DNA from: Anthoceros angustus
Lineage: Eukaryota > Plantae > Anthocerotophyta
DNA length: 64,000 nucleotides
Assembly (NCBI GenBank): GCA_010909165.1
Contig: MU008183.1
Coordinates: 806,001 to 870,000 of the forward strand
Reading direction: 5' to 3'
Positions 5,552 to 28,700 of this stretch are shown piece by piece (position 1 is the stretch's first letter; every line of letters begins with the position of its first letter). A program made the position numbers and the translations under genes. The notes beneath the pieces were generated by a model. The model made no database searches, was not told where the DNA came from, and worked only from the letters and a program-made list of their open reading frames with translations.

Positions 5552-8433
5552 GGCTGGAGGCTTAGAAAATGTGTCCAATATACCTAAACATTTCATGTGT
5601 TTCCTGTGCAGTTCAATGCCTAATGACTTTGTTAATAAATCAGCTGCGTTATCTAAAGTTTGAACATAACTAATATCTATAGTTTTATCCTCTATTTTCT
5701 CTCTGATGTAATGATATTCGATAGCAATATGTTTAGTTCTAGAGTGGAAGACAGGGTTCCTTGACAAGGCTATAGCTCCCTGACTATCACTCAACAACAA
5801 GGTGGGCTTTTCCTGCTTATGAAGAAGTTCAGCAAAGGGTGTAGGTGCAGATTTCGCATCTTCAAGTCCAAATTTGGTTAAACTCTCTTTGATGTACTTG
5901 GTTTGAACAATACTCAGAGTCTTGTTTGCTCGATCTCTAATAATGTTGACACCAAGTGCATATGTCATTTCTCCTAAATCAGACATTTCATAAAAGTCTT
6001 GAGCCTTTTGATCTCGGCTAGGAGAGTAAGGAGTTTGTGGCCATGAATACGTCCGACGAGAGCAATAAGTAAAAGATATCATTGCCTGATATTAGGATAT
6101 ACATGCATGCATCGGCATCACTTTGCCGGAAGCCTCTTTTGATGAGTTTCACATGTATGTCCATATTCCAATTTTTACCAGATTGCTTGAGACCATACAA
6201 GCCTTTAATTAGTCTGCATACCCAATCTTCCTTGCCTTTAACCTCATAACCTTCGGGCTGTTTCATGTAGATTTCTTCTTGAAGACGGCCATAGAGATAT
6301 GTTGTCTTCACATCCATCATATGAAGCTCAAGATCATGATGGGCTGTTAAGGCGAAGATTATTCTAAGGGAAGCAAACTTTGCTACTGGAGCGAATGTGG
6401 CCCATGGGAGGTAATCTAAACCCGTATCGGGTGAATCCTCGCCACAAGGCGTGCTTTGTATCTCTCAATGGAACCATCTCCTTTTCTCTTAATTTTGAAT
6501 ACCCATTTGCTGGTGACTATCTTCCTACCCTTAGGTGGCTTAACCAATTCCCATGTAGAGTTGCTAATGAGAGAGTTATATTAATCTCTACCTTCCATAA
6601 GGCTTTTCGTGAGAAGAGAAAGCTTGTTTTAAGGTAAGAGGTTCTTACGGATCTATGGTTGCCTTGTATACTTTGTGAGTAAAGTGACAGGGGAATAGGA
6701 TCATCAAAACAGCTAGATATCCTAAAGGAGGTTCCTTCCATCCTGCGGGTCCGGGATTGCGTGACGGGTTCTTAAGTTGTACCTTTGTGTAGGTTCCGTG
6801 CATCTTCCATCGGAGCAGAACATCAATAGGATCATGGTGCTCCATGTCATTCACGGAGGGTCATCATGCTCTTCATAAGAGTGTCAACCGGCTCCTCGAC
6901 TTGAATGTTGTCGCCATCCGGTGGTGTTTCATGTGGAATAGATGCTAACTCCTCCTCCTCCTGCGTAGAGGTTCAACCATGGGAACACGAGAGGTGAACT
7001 GGAAATTGAGTGATATAATGATTATCATCAAATGAGGAGGTATCCGGGCTCTTCTAAGAGACGTCCTCGTGGCCGGATGGACCAGCTCCCACTGGGGAAA
7101 AGAGGTAAGACTCATGAAAAGTAACACTCGGCATATATAAGCTTCCGTGGTGGGTTCAAATAGCTTGTAACCTTTGATGCCTTGATTGTAGCCAATGAAT
7201 AGATATTTGGCAGCTTTTGGATCTAACTTCGTTGTACTTTAGGGATAAAGACATATGCAGAGATCCAAAAATTCAAGGTGATCTATGGAAGGCTTGTTGC
7301 CGGTGAATGCTTCATATGGAGTCATACCGGGAACTGATGAAGTCGGAAGGCGATTCATGAGATAGGTTGTAAGGAGGGCCTCAAATAAGCTTTGGATAAG
7401 TTAGCTTGTGTTAGGCAACTGTGATCTCTTGGAGGCGGAGATTCTTATTTTCTGCGACGCCATTTTGCTGAGGAGTGTATACTACACTTAGTTGTTGAGC
7501 TACGCCTTCAGCTCGACAAAATTCAGCAAATCTATGAGATGTAAACTCTCCACCGTTGTCGGAACGTAAGGTCTTGAGTTTGTGATCTGTAAGCCTTTCT
7601 GCCCATGCCATGTAATCCTTGAAAAACTGATAAGTTTCACTCTTTTGGGTGAGGATGTAGGAGAGGCAGAAACGGGAATAGTCGTCGGTGAAAGTCAAGA
7701 AGTATCTACTACCACTAAAGGAGGGTGTAGAGAGGGGTCCACAAATGTCTGTGTGTACTATCTCTAAAGGTGACTTGGCCCTTTGTGGAGATGGATTTTT
7801 GAAAGGTTCCTGGTGACGTTTTGTGAGGACACAGGTTTCGCACCAATCTAAGTTGTGAACCTTGGAGAGACAGGGTGTTCTATACAGGTTGTCTCTAGAC
7901 ATTTGGAGTAACTTCTGACTATTAGGATGACCTAATCTACAATGCCAGAGCATCGTGTGTGTGGTAATGTTGGGAGGCTACATTGACGGAATGTGGCTCC
8001 TACTTTAATCGACAATCTATAGAGTCCATCTTCTAAGATGCCAGTGCAGATATTGTGTGTTCTATTCTTGAGGTAGGAAAGGAACAACTATCGCATATAA
8101 AAGGACCTGCATGTTGTGTTCTTTGCAAAGACTAGCGACACTAGGTTTTGCACATGGCGAACATGGAGGACTTGGTGAAGATGAAGAGTCCGACCGAATC
8201 ACATCCGAGTGTAACCTAGGCCGCTATGGAAGGTGTGATCATCGCCTGTGAGAACAATGATGTCCTGTGGTCGGGTGTATGACTCAAGGAGTCTTTGTTG
8301 TAGCAGATATGTGATGTTGCTCCACCGTCTGTACCAATAAGCTGGCCGGCTTAGAGGATGCAAGGCAAATAGTGAGCACACGTGTTGTTGATGAAGAGTG
8401 TTTCTTGAAGCAACATGAGCTTGCAATGGGCTC
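5543..8433 (-). pseudogene. Copia X pol, 3' part (PR, GAG-pre-integrase, integrase, RT, RNase H), frameshifted
   Basis: Protease WY.DGGATSHIC (~8290-8340), LWHCRLGHP and HTDICGP..FTDDYSR..LRSDNGGEF..PQQNGVAE (7411-7953), RT LIKGLYGLKQSG (6018-6320), RNase H NPVFHSRTKHIAIEYHYIRE (5543-5800). Confidence 0.85.
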
Positions 8434-8600
8434 TGCCAAGAATGCTGGGTCTGGCTGCAGACTCCTTCGTCGCAATAAAGAAAATTGCCCTGGCCTTTGG
8501 CCAAGGACACTAAGTTCTTCCTTGGCCTTTGGCCAGGCAAGAAAGTTCCCGGCCTTAGCCAGGAACAAGGCAAAGGAGGCATAAATAGCCTCCGACATGA
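8434..8600 (+). repeat. Repeat B, copy 1 (LTR-like; left end of the insertion that splits Copia X)
   Basis: Begins TGCCAAGAATG, contains GGAGGCATAAATAGCCTCC (TATA-like motif inside an inverted repeat), and is homologous to 9208-9388. Confidence 0.6.
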
Positions 8601-8605
8601 ATCAG

Positions 8606-9171
8606 TGAAATCAAGTTGGTTGCCCGAGGCTCCCACTTGATCTGCAGTTCCCAAAAGTCACAAGAGAGAAATAAGACAAGTTGTAGGGACGAAGTATGGC
8701 TGCCTTTCCATTCAGACAAACATCTACAATCCAAGAATCCATGGTCGGGCCCACATATATAGGCAAAACCCTGTGAGTTCTCGATGAAGTGCCTCCTCGC
8801 TCGATGGTAGGCACTTTAGGTATATATATAATCCTACTTTCCTTGGCCTTCGAATAAATAATAATGTTTATGAGTTCAACCATCTATTCGCCCTTTTCCT
8901 TGATTTACGATTTTTATGTGTTTTTCAATATAGTTCCGATGCCTATATATGCGTCATGCCACCGCGCCTTACATACATAACCATGTATATAGATTGCATG
9001 TGTCATGACACATCGTCCGTTAACATGTCCACATACATCACATGTCATCCATCCGTCATGCATACATACCATGTGCATGCCATCCATGGGCGATGCACAT
9101 GCCATCACATGCACGCATCCAAATCAAGTGGCTTATGCCAAATGGGATGCCAATCGATCGTCGTTGTTTCA
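8606..9171 (-). repeat. 3' LTR of the gypsy-MTase element
   Basis: About 566 bp, TGAAACA...ATTTCA on the minus strand; aligns along its length with 18950-19503. Confidence 0.8.
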
Positions 9172-9207
9172 TCCTCTTGCTCGTCTTTCACAAAGAATAA
9201 GATGATA

Positions 9208-9388
9208 TGTCAAGAATGGCCGCATAGCCGCATGCCGCGGCTCGACCGCAGACTCCTTCTGCCTGCAGCAAAGTGTCCTTGGCCTTTGGCAAGGACACTA
9301 AGTTCTTCCTTGGCCTTTGGCCAAAGAAAGTTCCCGGCCTTAGCCAAGGAACAAGGCAAAGGAGGCATAAATAGCCTCCGACATGACA
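9208..9388 (+). repeat. Repeat B, copy 2 (TGTCA...TGACA), just inside the PPT
   Basis: Shares CAAGGACACTAAGTTCTTCCTTGGCCTTTGGCCA...GGCATAAATAGCCTCCGACATGA with 8434-8600. Confidence 0.6.
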
Positions 9389-10431
9389 CTGAAAACTGGG
9401 GTGAAAACCCACTTTTCCACACTGTCACAATCCAAAAAAAAAGAACTTACCAAAGGCCAAACCATCCTTTCTCGCAGCGCTCAGGTGTGAGGTTAGGTGG
9501 AGGATCTGCATCACTCTCTAAGTCCTCATCATCCGATTCTTCAACAGTTCGGGCTTGATCTCCTCAGCTTGACTCCAAGTGCAAGAAACTCAAAAATAGG
9601 ACTGTCAGAGCTACCCTCCCGCTCGGATAATCAAAACAGTTTGGGGCAATGAATGTCATGTGCGGTGCTGCTGAAAAATGCCCCTCTCCGAATCCCATCT
9701 TTGTTTGCTCAATGTAAGGGATCTTCAATGCGTGACGCGATAAATTGCCTAGGCCATCCAACAACGGTGTGGCCTGTCTTGAGGTGATGGAAGAATAGCC
9801 GCCTTTCGGTAGACTAACCTTTCTCGCACCCCTGCCTCCCACATGATCGCTCCTTGGGCAACCTCAAGCCATCAAACACTTGATGCATGAAGAAGTTGCT
9901 GGATTTGCGCCATTCACAGAGGCTGTCCATGTCCAAGACATGGCACGGAGTCCTATGCAACTCAAACAATCACGGTGATCTGTGGGGTAAAACTCCACTC
10001 GACACCGCTCATGGTGTGTTTCCACATACAGCAGGAACTCGCCGAGCTCCCTAAAACTCACTGGGGGAATTCCCCTCTCGGGCTGATATGCCCGCTGCAG
10101 TGACAAATCCCATTTGCTTGCGCCCTCGTTATTCAGAGTCGGAGGAACGCGTGCTGGGAGATGCTGCACCAAGTTGCCGCACCTGCACACCTTTGGTGGC
10201 ACTACTTCAAGAACAGCAACTCTGGACGACTGCACTCGGCCGCTCATGCTCTTGTGTGTCTCAGAGGAGCAAACCGCCCTCCGCCTCCCGAGCCCCTTGT
10301 CCTAGTAGGCACTGCTCCTTCTCACGCCGTGGCGTTGCATCACGACAGGTGCCCCTGCGCCTGGTTCCGAGGCTTCTTCCCCATCTCGCTGCCGTGCTTC
10401 GCCGCCCACGCCAAGCTGAGCCTCCATCTCC

Positions 10432-10989
10432 TCACCGCCGCTGCTTTCGTGGCCTCCCTCTGCGCGCTTGGGTGCTTGCACCAAACACCACCGCACCTTC
10501 TTCGCTAATTGGTGCTAGGCTTGCCTCCGCTCGCATATGGTTCGTAACTCGCTCCATCCAACTTGAACCAACTTTGCACATAAGAAGGCGAGCACTTGCT
10601 CGTGATTGTCGAGCCCCCACCGAGGAAGACTCCTCCACGCAAGACTGAATTTCGCGCGTGCTCTCTTCCACACCTGGCCTTGGTGTCACTAAATTCCTCG
10701 AGGAACCGGACAATCGCCAGAACGGTGAGTGGCTCTGAAAGGCACTCTCAAGAATAGCAGCACTCGAGTTGCCTTGTTGGCTTCTAGCCTTGGCAACAAG
10801 GAATTTGTTGGCAAGATACGCCGCACGAACTTTCCTCTTTTGCAACTCTACCGCTATTTCGCCTCGTCCTCTTGTACCCATTCCAACACGAGCAGCTGGA
10901 GTGTTACTCTCCAACTCGCTCGTGCATGAAGGTACTTCTTCTTCATTACTCGATAGATAGAGCCATGGTCGCATGCAAACTTGTTGAAT
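10432..10989 (-). CDS. C-terminal pol extension ending in an AT-hook-like motif
   Basis: ORF 10432-11040 continues from the PHD finger and ends QARRGRPRKQRR* (RRGRPRK at 10444-10464). Confidence 0.5.
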   Translation of the reverse strand: MQQVCMRPWLYLSSNEEEVPSCTSELESNTPAARVGMGTRGRGEIAVELQKRKVRAAYLANKFLVAKARSQQGNSSAAILESAFQSHSPFWRLSGSSRNLVTPRPGVEESTREIQSCVEESSSVGARQSRASARLLMCKVGSSWMERVTNHMRAEASLAPISEEGAVVFGASTQARRGRPRKQRR

Positions 10990-11111
10990 CACACGGTGTT
11001 CACATAGCCACCCTTCCGAATTTCCATCTGGTGTTAGCAAAATATGATAGCCTCTGCACTGTCACATAAGAGCATAAGCTCTTCATCCGTGGTGTGCCCG
11101 CATGCCTCACA
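10990..11111 (-). CDS. PHD finger at the integrase C-terminus
   Basis: LPCEACGHTTDEELMLLCDS, then across a frameshift GYH..C LTP..PEG.WLCEH; this fits the C4HC3 PHD spacing. Confidence 0.8.
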
Positions 11112-13460
11112 AGGCAAGTCCGCTGGTGGTACCCACGTTTGGGGAACAATCCTTACATCAAGATTCGGCAAGTGACATGGAGCTAAATGTTTCATATGCT
11201 CCTTGCACCTTCTGCCATCCCGTCCTTCGAGTTCCACTACTCCTTGCTCACCCACATTTACCACCCTGAGAATCAACCTGCCAGTGCTGACATCTAATGT
11301 GCTTGCTGGTCTGTGTTGTAGGTACACATAATCTCCTGGTGCGAATTTCCTGGCCTTGGGCTTCCATGAGCCCCCCCGCGTGTGAGCATATCTCAACTGG
11401 TCTCTGTGCTGTGCAATCGCAAGATTGTCCATAGCCATGGGCAGAATCCTTCGGAACATTTCTGCTCTAGCTTGCACTTGCTGTAAGCACACCTCCATAT
11501 TCCTACTCCAATCTACAGGAGTAGAATATTTGTCTTGCACCACATTGGGCAAAACTGCATTCCTTCCGAACAACAGTGAAGCTTCCCAATGCTGCCTGCA
11601 CACTCACTCTATAACCCAACACAATATAGGGAAGTAATTCATCCCAGCACTTGGGTTCCACAGTGATCGATGCTTCGAGGCGTCCTTGAATGTCCGAACC
11701 AACCTTTCGCGGACCATCGCCTTGAGGATGATCCTGGGCGTTCTCCGTGATCAATCGACTTCATCCCGGCAAAGATTCTCCTCTGAATTCATTGCCTTGA
11801 TCGGTGAGCACCTCGCACAACTTCCAAATCTAGTACACACCGCAGAAAGGCTCACTGGTGTAATATGAGGTTCTTTGAGGCGTAAATGCTACCTCCACCC
11901 ACTTGAGAAGTGCTCAATCATCACCATACGGTGTGATTTCCTTGCTTTGTCAATGGTAGTTCCGGCATCAAGTCCACCGACCACCTGAAAAACAAACCCG
12001 GATTGGTAAAGAGTGTAACACAACATCTTGTGTGTTAAACCCCTTCATGCATCACTGCACTGCGACTAGCCACCACTCTTTCCACATCTCATACATGCCG
12101 GACCAAAATATGTGGTCTTGACATGTGGTGTGTCCTTTTACACCAAAGTGACCTAGTGTTTCATGCACTTTAATCACAATCCTGTCCTTTCTTCAGGACT
12201 TGGCACTTTCCTTACAACCTCTCCTTCCTGTGGCAACTCTCCATCCCGCCATGAGTGTCGGCCACTCGTCTCGTAGTCAGCGCTTGGTCTTGACATTAGG
12301 TCTGTACCTTCTTTGCGGTACCAGCTTGCTTGAATGCCTCGGATGTCCCAGCGGACTCTGTTAAGATCGGCTCTCCTCCTGTTCACCTTCGATTGCCATG
12401 AGTGCCATGAAACCGCTGGGCACATTTTCCATGTGTCCTAGGTCTGTCGTGCAATCGCAAGATTGTCCATAGCCATGGGCGAGAATCCTTGAACATTTCG
12501 CTCTAGCTTGCACTTCGTAAGCACACCTCCATATTCCTACTCCAATCTACGGAGTAGAATATTTGTCTTGCACCACATTGGGCAAAGCGCATTCCTTCCA
12601 ACAATGTAAAATAAGGATCAAGCTTCCCAATGCTGCACTCACTCTATAACCCAACACAATATAGGAAGTAATTCATCCCAAAGACTTGGGTTCCACGGTG
12701 ATGCGATTTCGAGAGCGCCCTTGAATGTCCGAACCAACCTTTCGCGGACCATCGCCTTGAGGATGATCCACGGACGTTCTCCGTGATCAATCATTCGAAC
12801 GCCCTGAATTCTCCTCTGAATTCGTTGCCTTGATCAGTGAGCACCTCCGCACAGCTTCCAAATCTACTCAGCACACACTGCAGAAAGGCTCTGCTGGTGT
12901 AATATGAGGTCCTCTGAGGCGGAAACGCTACCTCCACCCACTTGGAGAAGTGCTCAATCATCACCATACAGTGACGATTTCCTTGTTTTGTCAATGGTAG
13001 CTCCGGCATCAAATCCACCGACCACCTAAAGAACAAACCTCGGATTGGTAAGGAGTGCAACACAACATCTTGTGTGTTAAACGCCTTCAACGCATCACGC
13101 TGACTAGCCACCACTCTTTCCACATCTCGCATACATGCGGACAAAATATGTGGTCTTCGATGTGGTGTGTCCTTTTACACCAAAGTGACCTAGTGTTTCA
13201 TGCACTTTAATCACAATCCTCGTTCTTTCTTGAGGACTTGGCACCTTCTTTACAACCTCTCCTTCCTGTAGCAGCAACTCTCCATCCCGCCATGATCGCC
13301 ACTGCCTCGTAGTCCGCCGCATCGACATTAGGTACAGACCTTCTTTGAGCGGTAACGCTTGTGAATGCCTCGGATGTCCTGACTGTTAAGATCCGCCTCC
13401 TCCTGCTCACCTTCGATCGCCATGAGTGCCATGAAACCGCTGGGCACATTTTCCATGTGT
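11112..13460 (-). CDS. Gypsy integrase (H2C2 + DDE + GPY/F region), present as a ~1-kb tandem duplication
   Basis: VHETLGHFGVK; WSVDLMPELP..GNRHCMVMIEHFSKWVE..VLTDQGNEF (12791-13144); HPQ.DG..ER; WDELLPYIVLGYR; FAPGDYVYL. Confidence 0.9.
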
Positions 13461-13499
13461 CCTAGGTCTCGTGTGGGCATCACAAGATTTCGCATGGAT

Positions 13500-14760
13500 T
13501 CCTACTCAAACCATCCGCATTGTGGTGCACCTTGCCTGCCCTATGCACAATCTCCATGTCATATTCGAGAGCAATGCCCACCGGCCAGCTTTCCGCTCAA
13601 CTTCATGTCAGTCATGAGCCAATGAAGTGGTTGATGATCCGTCACCAACTGGAAACGCCTTCCAAGAGCAAATTAAATGCAACACTGCATCGCAGAAGAC
13701 ACTCTCCTTCATATGAGGAGTAGTTTACCTCTGAATTGTTGGATCGCTTGCATAAGCCACAACTCGCTCCATTCCTTGCGTCGTGACAAGATCGCTCCTA
13801 TCCCCGCAACTCCAATGTATGAACAAACGGCTTCTCAAAGTCCGGTCTAACCATGGGGCTTCTCACCAATTGATCCCTTAGATCTTGCCGGCTAGCTCAT
13901 TCTTGATCCCATTTTCCAAGTTACCCTTCTTCAAAGATCTCATACAAGGGTTTGCATGTGGAACGAGGTCTTTCATAAACCTCCGTAGTAGTTCACCAAC
14001 CCGAAATGCTCTAAGGCTGCCACATCCTTGGGCCTAGGCATCCGCATCACGGCTGCACCTTAGCCAAGCTGGCATGATTCCTCCCGCACAATTTCATGTC
14101 CAAGATACTCAATCCGCTTGAATGCAAATTTGCACTTTTTCGGATGAGCTTTCAAGCTGATTTGGACAATCTTTGCAAAGAGTCTCCGGATGATCCATAT
14201 GTTCCTCGATGGTGTCACGAAAACTAGGATGTCGCCAATGTAACAACGCAAACGGCGGATCCTGCACTCCAAGTCCGCAATTTCATGTCCAAGATACTCA
14301 ATCCGCTTGAATGCAAATTTGCACTTTTGGATGAGCTTTCAAGCCCGATTTGGACAATCTTTGCAAAGAGTCTCCGGATGATCCATATGTTCCTCGATGG
14401 TGTCGCTGAAAACTAGGATGTCAATGTAACAACGCACAACAGATCCTGCAGCCCAAGTCCGCAATTCTGGAAATATATGGAAGCATTTTTCAGCCCGAAG
14501 GGCATAGTCTCCCATTCCCAAAGCTGATCCTTTCCCCAGAAAGCCGTTTTGCTCTTGTCCTGCTCCTCAATCACAATCTGATTGAAACCTGAGCGGAAAT
14601 CCAAAGTGGTAAAGTACTTTGCCTTACCAATTGCATCAAAAATCTCATCTGGAGTAGGCATGGGATACCGCTCCATCAACGTTACTTCGTTGAGAGGTCG
14701 ATAGTCCCCACACATTCGCCTATCTTTCCACTCGCCATTTTCGTCCTTCTTCAGTGGGAA
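13500..14760 (-). CDS. Gypsy reverse transcriptase and RNase H, frameshifted, with an internal 189-bp duplication
   Basis: CGDYRPLN..YPMPTPDEIFD..YFTTLDFRSGFNQI..KTAFW..MPFGLKNA (14413-14715); YID(D)ILVFS; KCKFAFKRIEYLGH; RNase H SSYEGECL and LVTDHQPL.WLM. Confidence 0.9.
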
Positions 14761-15404
14761 CAGACATTCGAGCTTGATTTCGAATCAATCGCTTCACCTC
14801 CTCGACAACGCTTGTCCACAATTTCCCACTACCGGACTCAACCTATGCCTTCTTAAGATAGGCTCGAGCTAGTGGTAACAATCTTGAACTTGATCTTTTC
14901 TTCCTAGCTCATTCCATGAGCAAAAGCACCTCTGTTTTCTCGAGCATGTCGATGATCTTTTGTTTGTCCTCCTCGATGGCGTCTTCATCAATCTTCCGAC
15001 GTGAACCTCCTTGGTGACACTCTTGGTTACAAACTCTGTTTCCACAGTGACCATGCCAAACATGTCTTGGGTTCCTTCCCTTTCATCCGCCTCTGCTTTC
15101 CATCTTCCTAGGCTGCGATGGCTCTTTTCCTAGCTCATTCCATGAGCAAAAGCACCTCTGTTTTCTCGAGCATGTCGATGATCTTTTGTTTGTCCTCTGG
15201 ACTGACGTCTTCATCAATCTTCCAGACGTGAACCTCCTTGGTGACACTCTTGGTTACAAACTCTGTTTCCACAGCAGCCATGCCAAACATGTCTTGGGTT
15301 CCTTCCCTTTCATCCGCCTCTGCAGGCTTTCCATCTTCTGCTAGCTGCAAGTGATGGCTCTTTTTTCCTTCACCTCCTGCCAACTGAAATGCCAATCCGG
15401 TACT

Positions 15405-16322
15405 CACTAACCACCTTAAGTCATAGATCGAATGCCCTGTCCCAAAGAACTTGTGTTTGGACGCCTCACTCACACCCATGGTCTGCGACTTCTTGGCAAA
15501 TCCCATGGCTTGTTCGCGTTCCTCCACATTGAGCTCTCCTAGCTCCTCTCCCTTTGAGTCCAGGATCACGCCATCTCCTCCTCGCCTGAATGCGTAGGAT
15601 TGTGGCGTGCTTACCAAAGTCGGCCACGCCCTCCTGGCTTCGCCAACTCTGTTCACTGGATAAAACGGAAGTTTGTCCATTTTCTTGACTTGCTGCGAGT
15701 ACCTTTCTGGTTCCATGATTTCACTCACAGTCTTCCGTGATGGAATCATGAGTGTTCTGTGCTGTCTCAGTGTCTCAAGTCCTGCAACGTTGGTCCAGTA
15801 GCTGCGAATCCTGTGTGCGTAAGAGCCACACTGCACAGCATCAATGACCAGCTCATTGCCGAACCATGATCGAACCTCCTCATACATCGCTCGACGGACG
15901 CTTGTCCAACGCTCCACACACGTTTTCCAAGATGTACCAAAGATCCGGGATTCACAAGTTGAACCTCCACGACAACTCCGACCTCGGCAAGGGAAACACC
16001 TTCGCCTTTCCCTCTTCCTGCCACTGAGAAGGTCTTACATTCCCATCCTGCGATGATCATATCCATCGGGCAGAGCGTGCAGCTGCTTCCTTCCCACAAG
16101 CTTCAGATCCGTGGGCAGCCTGCTCTGACAACCTCTCACTGCGTCTTCTCTTAGAGATGGAAATAACTTGCACAACTCGAGAATTATTGCCACGACTCTA
16201 GCCTTCTCGTCCTTTTCCACATGTGTGTAGCGCAAACCTTGATGCCACATTGAAGCACCGCCCAATCCGCCGATTCTCGAGCACAATTCCAACAAGTGAA
16301 TTCCTTCGAACTTGCTCTCCAT
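15405..16322 (-). CDS. C5 cytosine DNA methyltransferase domain inserted between protease and RT
   Basis: Motifs occur in canonical order across small frameshifts: I LLELCSRIGG, II THVEKD, IV DMIIAGWECKTFSVAG, VI YILENV (15919-15936), VIII IDAVQCGSYAHRIRSYWTN, IX EEREQAMGF, X LGQGI (after a 1-nt shift) followed by LRWL. Confidence 0.88.
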
Positions 16323-16739
16323 CGCACTACCGAATCATTGATTCGCCTTCCCTCCGTCTTGGCGGGCTTCATGTTTAGTATGGATCTCTCCGGACATGTG
16401 TCGGTGAGATTCCAGGCGATTCTCCTTTCGTGATTTTCTCGAACCCTTGCCTCCTCAAGGTGCTCGAGCGCGATCTTCAAGACTCCCTTTCCGCTCTGCG
16501 GGTTTGGTGCTTCCCGAGAGGACAATTCCTCCCTCCTCCCACATCTCGGTCTCGTGCTCAATTTGAGCACCGGAAGCCATCCGTCTCGACCATCTCGCAC
16601 TGGCCTTTTCGCCTCTTCATCGCTCCTTCTACCACTTTGCTCATGTTCAAGGGAATAGTTGCATGAAAATCCCTTGCTTCCACATGGTCGATAGAAGGCT
16701 TCTTCATACTGGATCAACTCCCATGGCGGGGCCATGTGT

Positions 16740-17030
16740 AGCATCCGCCTCTAACAAAGACATCGTAGGACGTGGCAGTCACCAAACACGAACCTCCATT
16801 GTGGTCGCATCCTCTGGCTCGGCTTCAACTCGATCTTGATCGGTTTCGGTCATCCCCATCACCATTTCCTTCTGCTGAAGTAGTGATGCTTACATCGCTT
16901 GGTACCAGCTTGCGCCATATAGCTTGAGAGCGCAGAGCTCCCAACAATCCGGATCTCGCTTCCGGTCCACCAAAGACATCGATCGGTGCAAATCCAAAGG
17001 TAATTTCCGGTTTGTTGTCAATCATGGCAA
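16740..17030 (-). CDS. Gypsy aspartic protease, degraded by indels
   Basis: C-terminal motif VTATSYDVFV.G (a YDVLLG equivalent) at the expected position. The catalytic DSG is not cleanly readable. Confidence 0.5.
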
Positions 17031-17269
17031 CACCTCCTTTACCCCGACGCTGTTTTTAGATGGTCTCCTCGCAGTACATCAAGCTGTTGGACTTCTCGGT
17101 TCTATCTCTTCCGATCCATTCCCTCATGATCTTCTTGAAATGTGAACTCTTGAGTCCAAGTTCCAGCAAATTGACCACAGGAACCTCCATGGCCTTCTCC
17201 AACAGTGCTTCTACATCCACCTCCGGGTTAGAAGCCACCTGCGCAATAGTACCATCATCCACTTGCCTA

Positions 17270-18485
17270 AAACTTTCGGGCATTTTGCTTTGCTCTCGCT
17301 CGACGCGTGTCCTTGGCGAACCCTTCTCCGAGGTCAAGTGCGGTCTTCTTCTTCTTGCGAATCGCCATGCCATACACTTCTTCATCCGAGTCGAGAAAGA
17401 ATGCGTGACTGACCACCGCCATGTTAGCCATCCGCCGCATCTCTTCAACTTGCGCAAGAAGAGCCTTGCGACTAGGGCCTTTGCCCTTCTCCTTTTCACG
17501 CCCATTACCTTGGGCTTGAGCTCTGGATGAGCCTCCCAACATGCGGCTTCTATGTGGCCCCATCGACCACAAGCCTTGCAAACCTCCTTGCCCTTCGGCC
17601 TGTGTCCAAGTCACATTCAAATGACTTGTGTGCACCACGGCACCTACATTTGATGGCACCGACTGCGTTGTTCACGGTCTCTCCTTCGAATGGTGATTGT
17701 TTGGCCGAGGATCGCTGCCCAAATCGCCGCTACCGACCCTTATGAATCTGGATCCTCCTTGTCGAGCCGTAAGAAGTGCCGCTCGATCAAATTGTGATCC
17801 TCCGTATGCTTGATGACAGATCCCCTTTAGCACCTTCTCCGCAATCTTGTAGGCGTCGGTCAAACCATACTTTTCTCCATGAGCACCATGAAGAGCATCC
17901 ATTACCTTCCTTGCATCGGCATGCCATGAAAATTTCAGCAGCCTCCCGCATGGTCTTCACATCCGTATCCTCCACCAGGATCTTCAGCCTGATGTATGCA
18001 GCGTCTCATTGGACTTGAAACTAAAACGAGTCAGCTCTTGAATCTTCTCCAAGGATGATGTTGGAAACATGTCCTTCAATCTTTCGAACATGAGATCAAC
18101 CAAATACTCAAGCTCGTCCTCCTTGGACGGAGTGAGTGGTTTGCCAGCAACTCCTGCTGCAAGATCTGCTGTCCTCGTTCTCTGCCGATGCCAAGATGTC
18201 CTTCTTCTCGTCTCTGTAGTACATCAACGCCTCACCTGCCAGATATTCTGACATCTTCATGAGTGCCATTCTCTGGGTGAACTGATCCTTGTACTTCATC
18301 TTGTTTTCTGCCATTCCCCAGCGGAACTTCTCCTCAAAATCCGCCAGTGACATGCTCCCATGTTTTCCGGTGAAAACATCATTCTTGCTGGGCGTATTCT
18401 CCAGCTCCATTTGAATCGGCTCTTCGCTCCAGTCTCCAAACTGAGATCTCGTGATGGGCGTGTTGTCCCTGTCTTGGTCAGGCAT
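17270..18485 (-). CDS. Gag of the gypsy-MTase element with two zinc knuckles, frameshifted
   Basis: ORF from 18485 has VFTGKHGSMSLADFEEKF...YLAGEALMYY; CRCRGAHKSFEC and CKACGRWGHIEAAC-like knuckles lie at ~17540-17670. Confidence 0.7.
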
Positions 18486-18934
18486 CTTTTTGAAAGGTGA
18501 TCCGTAGATCTTCTGTCCCTTTCTAGACGATGACGAGCGGTGTCCCTCGTTACTCCGACCTCAAAAATACCTCAAAAATACCATCACGCCGAACTCTATG
18601 ACGATAACTGAGGAATGTTGTCAAACGGCAATCCTCGCCAACCGCCCAACTAGCTAAGAAAAGAGTGTCTGCTTTCTATCCAGAGACGCTCCCACACATA
18701 TGCAGGACCCCGGTGAGCCTAGCCAACTCGCAATGGTCGATTCGGACTACAACGGTCGAAATCGATGGTAGAATTCCTATCCATCGAAGTCATTCACTTA
18801 TCCGTGGAGCCTGCTTCGCTCCCCGCCATGGACCGTAGTCGCCCCTCGGGCTGGAAGATGATCGATTTCCGCCTCCTCCGGTCTCGGCGCCACAATGTCC
18901 TCCAATGCAGCCTGCCTCGCCTCCAAGCAATGAG

Positions 18935-18947
18935 GGATTGTAGATGT
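18935..18947 (-). promoter_or_regulatory. Self-priming primer-binding site (Tf1 type)
   Basis: ACATCTACAATCC on the minus strand, 2 nt inside the 5' LTR, is the exact reverse complement of GGATTGTAGATGT (19074-19062), which lies 25 nt downstream of the LTR TATA box. Confidence 0.75.
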
Positions 18948-18949
18948 GG

Positions 18950-19503
18950 TGAGATCAAGTTGGTTGCCCGAGGCTCCCACTTGATACTGCGGTTCCCAAA
19001 AGTCACAAGAGAAATGAGACAAGTGTAGGGACGAGTATGGCTGCCTTTTCCATTCATACAAACATCTACAATCCAAGAATCCATGGCGCCACATATATAG
19101 GCAAAACTGTGAGTTCTCGATGAAGTGCCTCCTCGTTCTCGATGGTAGGCACTTTAGGTATATTATAATCCTACTTTCCTTGGCCTTGAATAAATAATAA
19201 TGTTTATGAGTTCAACCATCTATTCGCCTTTTTCCTTGATTTACGATTTTTATGTGTTTTCAATATAGTTCCGATGCCTATATATGCGTCATGCCACCGC
19301 GCCTTACATACATAACCATGTATATAGATTGCATGTGTCATGACACATCGTCCGTTAACATGTCCACATACATCACATGTCATCCATCCGTCATGCATAC
19401 ATACCATGTGCATGCCATCCATGGCGCACATGCCATCACATGCACTTCGCATCCAAATCAAGTGGCTTATGCCAAATGGGATGCCAATCACCGCTGTGTT
19501 TCA
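18950..19503 (-). repeat. 5' LTR of the gypsy-MTase element
   Basis: About 554 bp direct repeat of 8606-9171, with a TATATAT box at 19093-19099. Confidence 0.8.
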
Positions 19504-19531
19504 TTTGCTCATTCATCTGTTACAGATGACA

Positions 19532-20501: not shown

Positions 20502-21080
20502 TCATGCATGAAATCTGCAAGGAGCAAGGCAAGGAGAAACCTTTTCTATCCTGGCATGTTTGTCAGGATGACAAGCAGCAGTAAGGGAAAGTTTGTGATG
20601 AAGACAGCTCAGCATGTGTGGATCAGTAAGCTCAAGGAGGCACTCATTGAGATCACGCACTTCTCTTGCTAACTCCTCTATGCTTGTTCTGCGTAGGGTG
20701 TGTTGATGGCGTGGTTCTCTGGTGAGAGTCTTTATCGAACTGAAGATTTCTTGCTTGCGTTGTTGTGAACCTGCATTGGAGACAGAAGGAAGAGGACCTG
20801 CTTGTAGATTTGGGATATGATCAAGAGCGAGTTCTATTGCTTTCACTTGACTTGAACTAAAGATAGTAAGCAAGTTTCTTCTAGCAATTTCTATTTGCCT
20901 CCCTTGATCTTCTACTTTGATTAGAATAGAGCCAATGAAGTTAGCAATAAGTATGGAATCTCCTACTATCTGGCTATACTTCCTAGCAATTCTAATCTTT
21001 GCATTCCTATATTCTATATCTTGTCTTGCAGCCTTAATCTTCTTCCAATAGCCTTGCTTGCGAGGATTAAAAGAATCCAT
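20502..21080 (-). CDS. Extra ORF upstream of gag in Copia X (coiled-coil-like, Cys/His-rich C-terminus)
   Basis: 192-aa uninterrupted ORF starting ~190 nt after the PBS and ending ~85 nt before gag. Confidence 0.55.
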   Translation of the reverse strand: MDSFNPRKQGYWKKIKAARQDIEYRNAKIRIARKYSQIVGDSILIANFIGSILIKVEDQGRQIEIARRNLLTIFSSSQVKAIELALDHIPNLQAGPLPSVSNAGSQQRKQEIFSSIKTLTREPRHQHTLRRTSIEELAREVRDLNECLLELTDPHMLSCLHHKLSLTAACHPDKHARIEKVSPCLAPCRFHA

Positions 21081-21269
21081 CGCGTTGGAGCAAGGATTGG
21101 ATGCACTGAGTGTGCATTATTGAAGATTAGGGAACCTACAAACATGACAGCAATCTTTGGCATGCAATCTAAAGAATCTATACATCATCTAAAAAGAAAT
21201 GAAGAAGAAGATGAAGAAGAAGAGTAGATCAGCATGTCAAGTTGCCCAATGCAAATAGAGAGCAACAAT

Positions 21270-21297
21270 GCTCTGATACCATGATGAGAATCATAGC
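21270..21297 (-). promoter_or_regulatory. tRNA-iMet PBS plus a 16-bp remnant of the Copia X 5' LTR
   Basis: TGGTATCAGAGC on the minus strand (21270-21281), abutting TGATGAGAATCATAGC, which matches positions 1-14. Confidence 0.8.
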
Positions 21298-21766
21298 CTT
21301 CACTCACAAAGGTTTTCTGACCACCTTTAGACAGGCCTCTAGGCAAATAGTGAAGTTGTTCTATCCCCAAAATGGTAAGTTGTTTTATGTGGCTTCAGGC
21401 ATCTTGCCAGAATCCCTAAGTTCAACGCACACCACGCACAGTTTGGTAGCTTCCAATATAGAAGCTACAACTACTTTATGGCACTTGCGCTTGGCCCACT
21501 TACACTTGCAGGGCATGTAGGGGATGTCAACCAACAATCTGGTCTTATGTTTACCTTCCAAGTTGGGCGCTTTACCTCTATGCCCCGGCTGTGTCGTAGG
21601 CAAGCACGCTAGCAAGTCCTACCCTAGATCACACTCTCAAACATCCCGTATCCTTGAGTTGGTGCATGCTGACCTTTGCGGACCTATGCACACAGCAAGG
21701 TTGTCAGGGAAACTATACATGTTTGTCCTGCTCGATGATTTTAGTCACTGGGCATACCTTTATTTC

Positions 21767-22028
21767 TGAAGGATCGTGTGGCAGCACATGATGGTGGAAA
21801 GAGAAGAAGAGAGGAGGAGGCAAGTGTAGCTCTCTCACATTGAGATGAGGCTTGGAGGGTATTTATACCCTTCAATAGGGCTCCCTAGGAAGCTCCACAA
21901 GAAGCCCCTAGGAAGGAGCACAAGAAGCTTCCTAGTGATTAGCTTCAGCTAAACTAATGATACTTAACTGACACCTAACTTAGACTAAGTGTATTAGTCT
22001 AAGTACATTGGGCTTTAATACCCTTACA
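21767..22028 (-). mobile_element. Solo LTR of the Copia-1 family with 5-bp TSD
   Basis: Flanked by ATTTC at 21762-21766 and 22029-22033. Removing it restores the Copia-3 integrase frame. Confidence 0.93.
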
Positions 22029-22349
22029 ATTTCCTCAAACACAAACCCGAGGCATTTCCTTGTTTCAAGATGTTTCAAGCTTATGTGGAGAACCACACTG
22101 GACAGAAGATCAAAATTTTTTGCATTAACAATGCAGGAGAACTTACATCACCACTTTTTGAGGGACATCTCCTCTCGCACGGGATACAACACCAGAAAAT
22201 TGTCCCGTATTCGCACCAACAATTGGGCAAAGCAGAGCGCTGTCATCGCTCCATCATAGACGGTGTCGCAGCTCTCTTCACACTGCTGGCCTTCCAACCT
22301 ACTTGTGGGCAGAGGCTGCCACTTGTGTCTGCTCACTACTAGGAAAAGT

Positions 22350-23020
22350 ATACTTTTACCACGGACATTACTACGGACTTTACAACAGTCATTACTACTC
22401 CCGTAGTAAAACGTCAGTAGTAAACACATAGCGTTAGTATCCGTGGTAAAGTCCAGTATATCGTATATGATGGCTATACTCAGAATACGAAGTATGTACG
22501 GAGTACGTTAACGAAGTCTAGCGTATACTAGTTAATCTTTAAATTACCATACCTTTTACCACGGTATTTACTACGTTGAATAACCACGAACTTTACTACT
22601 GGCCTAATCGTGGTTAAAAATAATGGTTAGTTGACCGAGATTAGCTAACTATAATATATTAACTACAGTTAAATTAGTGGGTTTGGGTAATCATATGTTA
22701 CCATAGTTAATTAATCACGGTTAAGTAATCCGACACTCCGTTGTAAATTCTCGCTGGCTACCATTGTAAATCTCTCCGTTGTAGAAAAAGACCCTGTAGT
22801 AATATTTTATAGTAAATATTTGTAGTAAAATTCTGTAGTAAACATCGTGGTTAAAATATGTAGTAAAATTCTATAGTAATAATACGTAGTAAAATTCTAT
22901 GGTAAAAGTATGTTGTAAAATTCTATGGTAAAAAGTCTGTAGTAGAATTCTACAATAAAAGCTCGTAGTAAATTTCTTTAGTAAAAGTTCGTAGTGAAAT
23001 GTTTAGTAGTGGACTCCCTG
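22350..23020. repeat. CACTA left subterminal repeats
   Basis: Many (G/T)TAGTAAA(ATTCT) and TTTAC(C/T)ACGG motifs in both orientations; mirrored at ~35530-35970. Confidence 0.8.
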
Positions 23021-23096
23021 TAGTAAATGGAACGTAGCAAAAGATTGGCTGCAAAGTGTATGCAGATTCATAAACGGTGTTGTCAATTTCATAAGT

Positions 23097-23826
23097 GGGG
23101 AGGGAAGGGAGGGAAGGGAGGGAAGGGAGGGAAGGAGGAAGGGAGGAAGGAGGAAGGAGGAAGGGAGGAAGGAGGAAGGGAGGAAGGGAGGGAAGGGAGG
23201 GAAGGAGGAAGGGAGGGAAGGAGGAAGGGAGGGAGGAAGGAGGAAGGGAGGGAAGGAGGAAGGGAGGGGAGGAAGGAGGAAGGGAGGGAAGGGAAGGGAG
23301 GAAGGAGGGAGGGAAGGGAGGGAAGGGAGGAAGGGAGGGAAGGGAGGAAGGGAGGAAGGGAGGGAAGGGAGGGAAGGAGGAAGGGAGGGAAGGGAGGAAG
23401 GGAGGGAAGGGAGGAGGAAGGGAGGGAAGGGAGGAAGGGAGGAAGGGAGGAAGGGAGGGAAGGAGGAAGGGAGGAAGGAGGAAGGGAGGGAAGGGAGGAA
23501 GGAGGGGAGGGAAGGAGGAAGGGAGGGAAGGGAGGGAAGGGAGGGAAGGGAGGGAAGGAGGAAGGAGGGAGGAAGGGAGGGAAGGGAGGGAAGGGAGGAA
23601 GGAGGAAGGGAGGGAAGGGAGGGAAGGGAGGGAAGGGAGGGAAGGAGGGAGGGAAGGAGGAAGGGAGGAAGGGAGGGAAGGGAGGGAAGGGAGGAAGGGA
23701 GGAAGGGAGGGAAGGGAGGGAAGGGAGGGAAGGAGGAAGGGAGGGAGGGAGGAAGGGAGGAGGAGGGGACGGAGGGAGGGAGGGAAGGAGGGAGGAGGAA
23801 GGGAGGGAGGAGGAGGGAGGAAGGAG
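23097..23826. repeat. Pure G/A low-complexity tract (GGGA/GGAA units)
   Basis: About 730 bp almost entirely of purines; continues on the far side of Copia Y. Confidence 0.95.
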
Positions 23827-25748
23827 TGACAAATATTGGATTGGATTGGTGTAGACCAATTGCTATATTAAACAATTACATTATACATTTGTTAAAACAA
23901 TGAGTATATTAAGAATGACATATAAACCGAACTTAAGCTAGGTAGGGTGAATAGACACACCCTTTCATAGAGACGTAACCCTAATGAATGTACACACCTA
24001 GACTTATAATAGCTATGAACACATTCACACTATACATGTGTACCAAACGAACCCTAATGTATTTACACCCTATTCTCATCACTCCCACTTGAAAATCATT
24101 ACGGGTCTTTGCCTTCTTCCACTACTGCGCCTTGAGGAGACCGTGAGTTCACCGAGTCTTGAGATCCTTATGTACTGGCACGAAGCTCAAGATGGCGATG
24201 AATTCGCCATGTGCGCGTTCTTTATTGCTGCCATACGCCCATGCCTCGGCCATAAAGCGCTGAGGCGAGGTTGTAGCTATGGCGTCTCAGTCTCGATGAG
24301 GCTACCACGCCAAGGTGTATCGAGGGACTCATTAGGAGGTTTGCACACCGCTAGAACAATCGCCTGAGTCGGGTCAAGTCCTCCAACCAAGAAGGAGACA
24401 ACAGGGGAGCAAGCGGTGGGGAGACCGCGGGGAAGGCCGCGAGGGACAACCAAAGCTGCTTTGGAGCAAAGGCGCAAGGTTGAATCAAGACCAAGGAAAC
24501 GCTGCTTCAAGAGTCGCTGCAAGGAAGGGTGACATCGCACCATCGGGAGGGACGCAACCGTAATCCGAGGCTGTGAACACCACGTCCATGGGCGGCTTGT
24601 CCAGAGGCCGCACACCAGAAATTATGTACTTGCGCGTAAGCTCAAGAGCACCGCGATGAATTCGGCCATGTGCAGTTCGCTTCTTTATTGCTGCAGCTTA
24701 CGCCCATGCCTCCGGCCATAAAGCGTTGAGTGCAAGGCGAGGTTGTAGCTATGGCGCCCCTGTGTCCGGATGAGGCTACCACCGCCAAGCCGTGTATCGA
24801 GGGACTCATTAGGAGGTTTGCCACACACCTAGAACAATCGCCTGAGCGGGCCAAGTCCTCCAACTGCGAAGCAATCGAGACAAACACGAGGGAGCAAGCG
24901 GTGGGGAGACCATGGAAGGCCGCGAGGGACAACCAAAGCTGCTTTTGGAGCAAAGGCAAGGTTGAATCAAGACCAAGGAAACGCGGTCAAGAGCCGGGCA
25001 AGGAAGGGTGACACCGCACCAGGGGAGGGACGCAACCAATCAGGCCGTGAACACCACGTCCATGGGCGGCTTGTCCAGAGCCGCACACCAGAAATTGTGT
25101 ACTCCAGAGCTGTGGTGGAGCAGCGGCACTTCATTCTCGGTGAGTTCGAGTATGAAGGGTCTGACCAGCGTCCTCCTGTGCCTCCTAGGTTTCCTGTTCC
25201 CAGCGATGTGATGTCTGAGACCAAGGTGATCACCCCTGGAACATGGGAGGTGCCGGGCAGTCCGCTGTGGTACAAATGTCATTCTACAGGCCTGATCATG
25301 AAGCGTGTCGAGATTCAGATGTGCCGTGAATTCAAAGGGCACATGGTCAGCCTGTACAGTGAGTGTTACGTCCATCTTGTTGAAGTTCCATAACTTCTCT
25401 ATGTCTCTTGCTGCTTGTAGCTCGTGACATAGCTGTTTCCTAACCCCCTGCTGATCAGCATCACTCGTCTTTAATTCATGCTCCCACTGTCTCCTTTCAG
25501 GGTCTGAAGAGAGACTTGAGGAGGAGAACAGTTTGGAGAATAAGGATAGAATTTCCTACAAAGAGAGGAAGAAGAGGAACTCCCCTCGTACAGCAGATGA
25601 GATCTTCTCCTCTGAGTCTATTGGATATGCATCCTGGGAGAAGATTGGTGATTCTACCACCTCTGAAAGTAGGGGTTCCTTTAAATCTCCTCCTGAAGAT
25701 TCAGACGATGATGACAGCAATGATTGGGGTTGCATCTAGCTTGATAGG

Positions 25749-28700
25749 CTAGACTTTAGATGTGGCAGTGGGATTGCCTTCATGGCTTCCCATGCCAAGT
25801 ACTTTCATGTGCCTTTCGTGAAGTTCCCTGCCAATGGACTTAGTTAATATGTCTGCTGGATTTTCAGCTGTGGGCACGTACTCCAGGCTAATCTGTCCAG
25901 ATTTGATGAGATCACGTATGAAGTGATACTCAACCTCCACGTGCTTTGTCCTGGAATGAAAGACTGGATTGTGAGCTAAACTCATCGATCCTTGATTATC
26001 TGTCTTTATTGTGGTGCAGGCTGGAAGTGGGATTCCAAGTTCCTTAAACATCAACTTGCACCAAGCGATCTCTTCGCAGCACTGTAGATATATTCAAATT
26101 TCAGGCTTGATAAAGCCATTCTGTTTCTTACTAGACCAACAGATTGGTCCTCCAGCTAACATAACTATATAACCTGAGACTGACCTTCTTGTGTCTATGT
26201 CTCCGGCATAATCAGAATCTGTGAAGACATCAAGATGTAAGGGTACTCCAGGTATGTTTCTGTAATTTATACCAATGCTGTGAGTTCCCTTTAAGTATCT
26301 GAAAACTCTTTTAACACCTATCCAGTGTGTTTGTCCTGGGTTTTCCAGATACTGTGATAAGACACTAGTAGCATAGGCTACTTCCGGCCTAGTTGTGTTT
26401 GCTGCATATATGAGTTTCCCAACTGCTTGTCTGTAAGGGACTAAACTCATTTTGCCCTTTTCTAATTGTGTATCAGGACACATGGACTTACTCATTTTCA
26501 GTCCACAAGGTAAAGGGGTTGCAGAAGGTTTAGCATCCTTCAAACCAAGTTGCTCAGCACTATTGAGAAGGTAACGTGGCTGCGTAAGTGAGATTGTTCT
26601 CTTCTTTCTGTCACGTTGAATAAGAATACCAAGGCAGCTCTGTAAGGCTCCTAGGTGTGTCATCTCAAACTTGGTTGATAACATTTTATTAATGTCTTTG
26701 ATGAAGGTGGGACTGTTACAAGCCAATATAAGGTCATCAACATATACTGCCAGGTAACACACTACTTCATTTGCCCTGTACACATATAAGCTTCCATCTG
26801 AAACACATCTAACAAAATTCAAAGCTCGCAGCTCTTCGTCCAGGACAGCATTCCATTCAAGAGCTGATTGTTTCAGTCCATACAGGGTTTTAATTAAGCG
26901 TAAGACATGGTCTTCTTTCCCTTTAACCTCGTATCCTAGTGGCTGTTGCATGTAAATTTCAGTATCCAGCTTTCCATGTAAGAAAGCTGTCTTTACATCA
27001 AACATATCCAGCTCATAGTCATTGTGTGCTGCCAATGCACAGATAGTGCGAAAAGTGGCCAGCTTAACAACAGGAGCATATGTTTCAAGGTAATCGAGGC
27101 CTGGTACTTGAGAAAAACCTCTGGCAACAAGCCTGACTTTATAACGATCAAAGGTACCATCAGCCTTAACCTTTAATTTGAACACCCATTTGCAAGATAC
27201 TGGCTTGCGTCCAGGAGGTAGTTTTGCTAATTCCCATGTTCCATTTTTTATGAGGGAATCGTATTCAGATTGAATGGCCTTCTTCCATTCAACAGCATCA
27301 GGACGTCTCAAAGCTTCTTCATAAGATTGAGGCTCCATGGGATCAAGGTCAACTGCATGTGCAGAAGGTTTCCTAAAGTCTTGTGATTCATAAAAGTCTG
27401 GTGCACGTCTGTCCCGTGTAGGATAACGGCGTACAGGGAGAGGAGGTGGCTCGTCATCCTCAGGGTCACTATCAACAAGAACAGCAGGATCAGGATCAAG
27501 GTCATCAATCTGGAACAAGGGCCTGTGATCGCAACATCATGAGGAGGTTGGTCTCAAGATCATCGCAAAAATTCAAGATCGCAATCGCTGGTTGTCCTCA
27601 TTATCACTTTGCTGGTGGTCTTCCCCCCCTGCAGGAGCAAACTCCTCATGGGGGTGATCAGGGAAAACCGTGATGAGGAAGAGCAGCTAGATCAAAATCG
27701 TCTGAAGGGATGGGAGGAGCTCCCACTGGCTGCCAAACTTGTTGTTCATCAAAAGTAACACTGCGAGCATAAACTACAGTGTTCTCAGGTACATCATATA
27801 ACTTGTATGCTTTAATACCTTCAGTGTAGCCTATCATAAGGTATTTCTTGGCTTTAGCAGCTAACTTAGCACGTTTCTTCTTAGGGATGAAGGCATAAGC
27901 TATGCATCCAAAGGTTCTAAGGTGTAAGATAGCTGGTTTTCTACCAAAGAAGGCTTCATAGGGAGTTTGTCCAACAAGTGCATTAGTGGGCAGCCTGTTA
28001 TGCAAGTACACTGCTGTCATAAGGGCTTCAGCCCAATAGGAAAGAGGCAGAGAAGCTTGATGAAGCATAGAAGAAGTCATTTCCTGCAAAACAACATTCA
28101 AATGCTCTGCCACACCATTTTGCTGTGGTGTATATACAACGGTAAGTTGCCTTCCTATTCCCTCGGCTGTACAGAAAGATTGAAATTCACCAGAAGTGAA
28201 TTCACCTCCATTGTCTGATCTGAGGGTTTTTAACTGCTTGCCGGTCCAGCGCTCTGTGTACTTCATGTAATCTTTGAATAGAGAAAAGCATTCACTTTTA
28301 GCTTTGAGAATATAAGCCATGACAAACCTTGTCTTGTCATCTGTGAATGTCAGGAAGTACTTGCCGCCACCAATTGAAGGTCGGAGAGAGGTCCATGAGT
28401 CCGTGAACCAGCTCAAGAACCTCAAGCTCAGAGGAGCCTTTATTCTTGAAAGCTCGACGCTTTGGATAAGACAGTTTCACATAGAGGTAGGGTTGGCAGT
28501 GTGCCAATTTTGCCATCAGCATACAGGTCACTGGTTGCAAGTTTCTGTAACTTAGCACTATGTGGGTGACCTAGGCGAGCATGCCACAGCTTAGCTTTAT
28601 CTTCTGACTTACTAGAAGACTCTGTAGAATTAGCAGCTAAGTGTGTTTTTGCTGTATGGCTGTCTGTATGCAGACGAAAGAGGTCATGTGAGGATGACCC

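Follow-up and report, generated by a model that had tools for sequence, protein, structure and literature searches.

A decayed Ty3/gypsy retrotransposon copy with the remains of a DNMT3-type cytosine methyltransferase domain upstream of its reverse transcriptase

Cytosine methylation is the main weapon of the host against transposons, and a transposon with a de novo methyltransferase of its own inverts this logic. Transposon-borne methyltransferases have so far been documented in dinoflagellates and in one streptophyte alga. The 64-kb stretch of DNA analysed here (hereafter the window) raises the question of whether such an element is also present in a likely land-plant host, because a first-pass annotation had claimed an LTR retrotransposon with a C5-cytosine methyltransferase (DNMT) inside its pol region. 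Besides the host, the points of interest are the two domain layouts found among the relatives, a Glu-Cys catalytic loop and a PHD finger as partner of the enzyme. The claim itself is upheld by a pair of LTRs, by four colinear pieces of the domain that are matched by a profile HMM and by the location of the DNMT upstream of the reverse transcriptase (RT). The element and its terminal repeats are as follows:

8457-19504, minus strand: whole element, a decayed Ty3/gypsy LTR retrotransposon copy
18949..19504, minus strand: 5' LTR (A1) with TG...CA ends, matching 8605-9172
8605..9172, minus strand: 3' LTR (A2), preceded by a purine-rich tract (self-comparison)
9248..9386, minus strand: repeat B1, shortly before the 3' LTR, 89.7% identical to 8457-8600
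8457..8600, minus strand: repeat B2, directly after the 3' LTR (self-comparison)

The two LTRs, about 560 bp each and both with TG...CA ends, show a gapped identity of 94% and a K2P distance of 0.024 when only substitutions are counted. They differ by 13 substitutions and about 13 indel events, an unusual proportion that suggests an indel-prone assembly or a mutational bias; because the indels equal the substitutions in number, some of the frameshifts described below might be assembly errors. The terminal repeats are laid out as A1 ... B1, 75 bp, A2, 4 bp, B2. Since B1 and B2 diverge by 10%, four times more than A1 and A2 (2.4%), the B repeat is perhaps an older duplication and not a replicative repeat. 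Upstream of A1, some 45 nt resemble the purine-rich tract that precedes A2. A target-site duplication was not found (AGCGG upstream of A1, CTGAT after A2), no tRNA-type primer-binding site was recognised next to A1, and neither an Rfam nor a tRNA scan of the window yielded a hint of a primer or of the taxon. Just one methyltransferase-bearing copy was found in the window by self-BLAST. The element is surrounded by copia-type elements at 4183-7953, 20502-28425, and 52628-53257 (matches to RVT_2, gag_pre-integrs, and Retrotran_gag_2), and the copia RT in the window has its closest likeness in Streptophyta clusters. No host gene was seen among the window ORFs tested.

Read inward from the 5' LTR, the element holds a zinc knuckle, the DNMT, the RT, an RNase H, an integrase (IN), and the start of a PHD finger, and every domain is spread over several frames:

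17539..17580, minus strand: gag zinc knuckle CX2CX4HX4C (CKACGRWGHIEAAC), seen in the translated frame
16335..17538, minus strand: stretch of about 1.2 kb that holds the aspartic protease (PR) in relatives, with no recognisable domain here
16322-15345, minus strand: C5-cytosine methyltransferase domain, complete and with the standard order of motifs
14901..15364, minus strand: 230-bp tandem duplication at the DNMT/RT junction (self-BLAST, 92% identity; K2P 0.074)
13985..14865, minus strand: RT in several frames (Pfam RVT_1, E 1.4e-10; tblastn with the relatives P0175, P0171, and P0215)
14089-14466, minus strand: 190-bp tandem duplication inside the RT (K2P 0.039)
13483..13962, minus strand: RNase H (tblastn), colinear with the RNase H of relatives
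11403..13489, minus strand: integrase region (Pfam rve, E 3.7e-10), doubled by a tandem duplication of about 1 kb (12443-13489 and 11403-12464; self-BLAST, 87% identity; K2P 0.156)
11049..11110, minus strand: beginning of a C-terminal PHD finger that a frame break interrupts (tblastn and the Cys pattern in the translation)

The methyltransferase had been placed between protease and RT. Its location upstream of the RT is correct, but neither Pfam nor a profile made from the sequence that precedes the DNMT in relatives detected the protease in the window copy, and the position of the protease is known from intact relatives: P0215 and P0171 carry a PR at the position corresponding to window 16335-17538, and the zf-CCHC of the relatives lies upstream of both PR and DNMT. 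At the other end of the element, the tblastn alignments of P0215, P0014, and P0062 extend into their own PHD domains at window 11049-11110, and the PHD start after the integrase matches the PHD finger of most relatives. All three internal tandem duplications (K2P 0.039-0.156) are more diverged than the LTR pair, which indicates that the window copy was probably defective before its insertion, and it was probably mobilised in trans. As the first-pass annotation had suspected, the copy is inert: three frameshifts and a TGA in frame interrupt the DNMT, and the other parts of the element are broken as well and internally duplicated.

The first-pass annotation had given the methyltransferase a span of 15405-16322, which is right as to the start and the motifs; the domain continues, however, to about 15345 and is split into four frame pieces. 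Motifs I, II, IV, VI, VIII, IX, and X could all be placed on the minus strand, in the canonical order that had been described. A family HMM made from 75 full-length domains of relatives matched four colinear pieces of the window, a similarity well beyond chance:

16068..16322, minus strand: piece 1, motifs I-III, with motif I CSRIGG at 16283-16266 and motif II (VEKDEKA) in the same piece; family HMM match 16334-16038, profile positions 2-86, E 2e-5
16004..16063, minus strand: piece 2, after frameshift 1, with motif IV AGWECKTFSVAG (AGWEC; catalytic Cys codon 16039-16037, Glu-Cys dipeptide 16042-16037); family HMM match 16102-15770, profile positions 93-112, E 8e-6; Pfam PF00145 positions 62-83, E 0.28
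15898..15990, minus strand: piece 3, after frameshift 2, motif V-VI region, with the TGA at 15954-15952 and ENV at 15927-15919; family HMM match 15951-15883, profile positions 140-154, E 0.3
15345..15905, minus strand: piece 4, after frameshift 3, with motif VIII (GSYAHRIRSYWTN) at 15827-15789, the target-recognition region, and motifs IX and X before 15345; family HMM match 16034-15138, profile positions 156-344, E 2e-56; best phmmer match 7e-29

The frameshifts lie near 16068-16063, 16004-15990, and 15905-15898. A PF00145 search, which had been proposed as a check of the domain, reached at best 11 bits on the separate pieces against a gathering cut-off of 22, because the domain is split by the frame breaks; it was the family HMM that recovered the domain. 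PF00145 scores above the cut-off in P0215, P0171, P0174, P0170, P0009, P0013, P0014, and P0020, the intact relatives reaching 32-46 bits. Of 20 columns without variation in 53 relatives, 18-19 are preserved by the window, among them those of the catalytic Cys, the ENV Glu, and RxR. Motif I was rightly described as deviant, since its CSRIG departs from the LFSGIG or LFAGLG of the nearest subfamily; by the register of the HMM its invariant Gly is replaced by Arg, a point that is not firm in that MAFFT shifts the register. With the 260-aa ORF as query, a PDB sequence search gave no match and a word-based homologue search gave nothing within the allowed length range. A phmmer search with the same ORF among 1.84 billion protein representatives returned 463 clusters with E<=1e-3, and 245 passed E<=1e-10. 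Identities were 31-44%; the matches lie mostly within Ty3/gypsy polyproteins, and many are in proteins of 1,000-3,400 aa.

To which class of methyltransferase does the domain belong? A profile of 45 relatives' domains, compared with the PDB, matched DNMT3A best (4e-23), with DNMT3C and DNMT3B next; plant DRM (about 1e-13 to 1e-11), M.HhaI (about 1e-10), and DNMT2 (about 2.5e-5) followed. An AlphaFold2 model of the domain of an intact relative (P0215:949-1287) was obtained with pLDDT 95.4 and pTM 0.92, and in a Foldseek search of the PDB with this model all of the top 50 matches were DNMT3A/B/C catalytic domains (E 1e-20, TM 0.70/0.82). Judging from both the sequence profile and the modelled fold, the gypsy-borne domain is of the DNMT3 type. 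Like the host enzymes DNMT3A/3B/3C, it has an FxGxxxG-style motif I, an AHRxRxxW motif VIII, and the motif IX-X region. Unlike them, it comes without PWWP or ADD, it has Trp-Glu/Pro-Cys in place of their Ser-Pro-Cys, and its target-recognition segment is longer and family-specific, with an invariant LPT.

The Pro-Cys catalytic dipeptide, whose Pro is nearly universal, is absent from the window copy, which has Glu-Cys instead. The GWEC context that had been singled out is thus real; it is not, however, peculiar to this copy. Among 75 relatives, 45 have Glu before the catalytic Cys, against 22 with Pro, three with Asp, and two with Ser, so that the Glu-Cys loop is a trait of the family and not a mutation of the window copy. 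The Pro, Asp, and Ser variants are interspersed among the Glu-Cys members of the retrotransposon DNMT3 family. The 53 sequences have a mean identity of about 40%, and none of them departs from the catalytic Cys, the ENV Glu, RxR, or the Gly of motif I.

The relatives fall into two layouts. The majority layout, RT-RNaseH-DNMT-IN-PHD, includes proteins of Scenedesmus sp. PABB004 (annotated "pol"), Haematococcus lacustris, and Monoraphidium neglectum. The minority layout, gag zinc knuckle-PR-DNMT-RT-RNaseH-IN(-PHD), has two Closterium sp. NIES-53 proteins as its named members and further includes P0058, P0165-P0169, P0171, P0175, P0215, P0226, and P0229. P0215 (2358 aa, one ORF) has exactly the order of the window, PHD finger included; P0175 has its PHD in the next ORF; and P0171 is an intact ORF of 2352 aa (locus L007) with flanking repeats that are 98-100% identical, in a complex repeat layout. 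The DNMT3-type domain and the gypsy Pol domains stand in one ORF in P0215, P0171, and P0058, and the PR-DNMT-RT layout is represented both by single intact ORFs of at least 2,350 aa and by the streptophyte alga Closterium. By tblastn the window is colinear with P0171, P0175, P0058, and P0215 from the DNMT through the IN. No LTRs were seen within the Closterium locus L005. The contig of P0215 (L008:1-16272), whose name ends in "_c", is an exact repeat with a period of 8262 bp and may represent tandem copies or an assembled circular form of the element. P0208, a complete gypsy RT-RNaseH-DNMT-IN-PHD polyprotein, is assigned by NCBI to a bacterial MAG (Minisyncoccia) and probably derives from a eukaryotic contig that was binned into a bacterial genome. 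No named land-plant protein was found among the relatives, transposon proteins being seldom annotated.

A maximum-likelihood tree of the retrotransposon domains, computed without an outgroup and with the unrepaired window sequence (X at each break), separates the two layouts with support 100/99 (98 in a tree of 75 rows) and places the window within the PR-DNMT-RT clan. Within the clan the window occupies a long branch, with about 36-37% identity to the sequences closest to it, and the tree does not fix where that branch attaches. Both layouts share the GW(E/P)C loop, GSxAHRxRxxWTN in motif VIII, and the family-specific target-recognition segment; these common signatures, read with a tree that has no outgroup, point to one origin of the DNMT, which would later have been relocated within pol. 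DNMT-bearing gypsy elements are a very large family of the green lineage with two fixed layouts, one of which reaches Closterium and the genome of the window. The DNMT3-type module itself is heritable, with a fixed position in the polyprotein and catalytic residues that are conserved over deep divergence. Between the two Closterium copies, dN/dS is 0.49 for the DNMT and 0.41 for RT-RNaseH-IN; this one pair is weak evidence for a similar degree of constraint on the DNMT and on the essential domains. For P0215 versus P0001 no dN/dS value was obtained, the synonymous sites being saturated.

One sublineage bears on how much of the enzyme would be made. In P0170 (L010:4459-4480) a TAG closes the gag-PR-DNMT frame, and RT-RNaseH-IN-PHD lies beyond it without a change of frame. 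The leaky stop of tobamoviruses has the context UAG CAR YYA, and the TAG CAG TTA of L010 fits this type. With the DNMT at the end of the gag-PR frame, the enzyme would be produced in Gag-like amounts in this sublineage. In about a dozen other relatives, too, the protein stops a short way past the DNMT domain.

The annotation had suggested that the lineage may be unrecognised, which does not wholly hold. De Mendoza et al. (2018; PMC5890265) described a gypsy element from Klebsormidium nitens whose Pol ORF contains DNMT3-type domains, and the window element, which is of this kind, belongs to the very large green-lineage family described above, including Closterium with its PR-DNMT-RT order. KnitGypsy-Dnmt3 resembles the window element in having a DNMT3-type, non-rearranged domain in the Pol ORF of a Ty3/gypsy element of the streptophyte lineage. 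Its terminal repeats, published as A-coding-B-A-B with a Ka/Ks below 0.2 for the element (PMC5890265), recall the A1...B1-A2-B2 of the window, a likeness drawn from the published description; in the window, B1 and B2 are four times more diverged than A1 and A2. The two differ in host, an alga for KnitGypsy-Dnmt3 and a likely land plant for the window. Closest in organisation are P0174 and P0278, each an "unnamed protein product" of Closterium sp. NIES-53, and the metagenomic P0215, P0171, and P0175, which share the order of the window and belong to the same DNMT clan; a PHD finger is present in P0215 and P0175, as at the end of the window element. These relatives are intact or nearly so, whereas the window copy is broken. 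The chlorophyte RT-RNaseH-DNMT-IN-PHD polyproteins share with the minority layout the loop, the motif VIII signature, and the PHD after the integrase, but carry the DNMT after the RNase H and not before the RT, and they stand on the opposite side of the 100/99 branch. SymbioDIRS-Dnmt3 of Symbiodinium is likewise a DNMT3-type domain in a retrotransposon Pol, but it belongs to DIRS elements with a tyrosine recombinase in a dinoflagellate and was acquired independently. By these likenesses the window element counts as a fossil of the Gypsy-DNMT3 kind, which was already known. According to a 2019 review, land plants are without transposons that encode DNA methylases (PMC6338049), and two later works, a survey of 2025 and a preprint of 2026, still mention only "streptophytes," with de Mendoza et al. 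(2018) as their source. In the literature covered, which was incomplete, we found no report of a DNMT-bearing gypsy element in a land plant and no description of the chlorophyte RT-RNaseH-DNMT-IN-PHD family.

We consider it very likely that window 8457-19504 is a decayed Ty3/gypsy copy of a family that encodes a DNMT3-type domain in the order gag-PR-DNMT-RT-RNaseH-IN-PHD. It might be objected that a fragment of a host DNMT3 was captured by, or merely adjoins, a single gypsy element, or that the locus is misassembled, given the single copy in the window and the Pfam scores of the separate pieces, which lie below significance. We give hardly any credence to this, for Closterium and intact single ORFs of independent origin show the order DNMT-RT-RNaseH-IN, in some cases with PHD; tblastn aligns the window colinearly with these relatives, and the tree groups its domain with the retrotransposon clan. 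Only slightly less improbable is the proposal that the window copy is intact or nearly so and that its frame breaks are indel errors of the assembly. The balance of indels and substitutions in the LTR pair and the retention of nearly all invariant residues speak for it, but the TGA within the domain is a substitution, the invariant Gly of motif I reads as Arg in the HMM register, RT, RNase H, and IN are each broken up among several frames, and the element also carries three tandem duplications.

The main functional rival to the reading of the family as encoding a DNA methyltransferase accepts the element and its family but holds that the DNMT3-like domain, though conserved, no longer writes 5mC on DNA; it might instead serve in DNA binding, integration targeting, or RNA methylation, or act only with a host partner. 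The predominance of Glu over Pro before the catalytic Cys is in line with such a loss, as is the finding that, in the only published assay of a gypsy DNMT3 domain, that of Klebsormidium produced no methylation in yeast (PMC5890265). The authors of that work call the result inconclusive, however, because human DNMT3B failed in the same assay (PMC5890265). The invariance of the catalytic Cys, the ENV Glu, RxR, and the motif I Gly, the confidently predicted full DNMT3 catalytic fold, and the mixture of Pro-Cys and Glu-Cys members in one family also argue against a loss of activity, which we consider unlikely, at perhaps one chance in a few. The only retrotransposon DNMTs with a demonstrated de novo CG activity are the DIRS-borne enzymes of Symbiodinium (PMC5890265).

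If the family does encode an active methyltransferase, the enzyme would be made in its intact members as part of the Gag-Pol polyprotein, and may methylate the element's own new DNA, as was proposed for new cDNA by de Mendoza et al. (2018; PMC5890265), or the integration site. The PHD finger of the integrase may read chromatin or histone tails, and the DNMT and PHD together would allow the element to choose or to set its own epigenetic state. We suggest, tentatively and at somewhat less than even chances, that the genome is that of an embryophyte and harbours a deep-branching, multi-copy, and fairly recently mobile (as judged from the LTR divergence) gypsy-DNMT3 lineage with the PR-DNMT-RT order and an integrase PHD, and that Glu-Cys is a working variant of the active site. 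If this is true, transposon-encoded cytosine methyltransferases were not lost en route to land plants, contrary to the 2019 review (PMC6338049). A land-plant host with intact copies would then offer a tractable system for learning what use the element makes of the enzyme, be it self-marking of new DNA, camouflage, or target choice, and would also provide a test of DNA methylation by a Glu-Cys active site.
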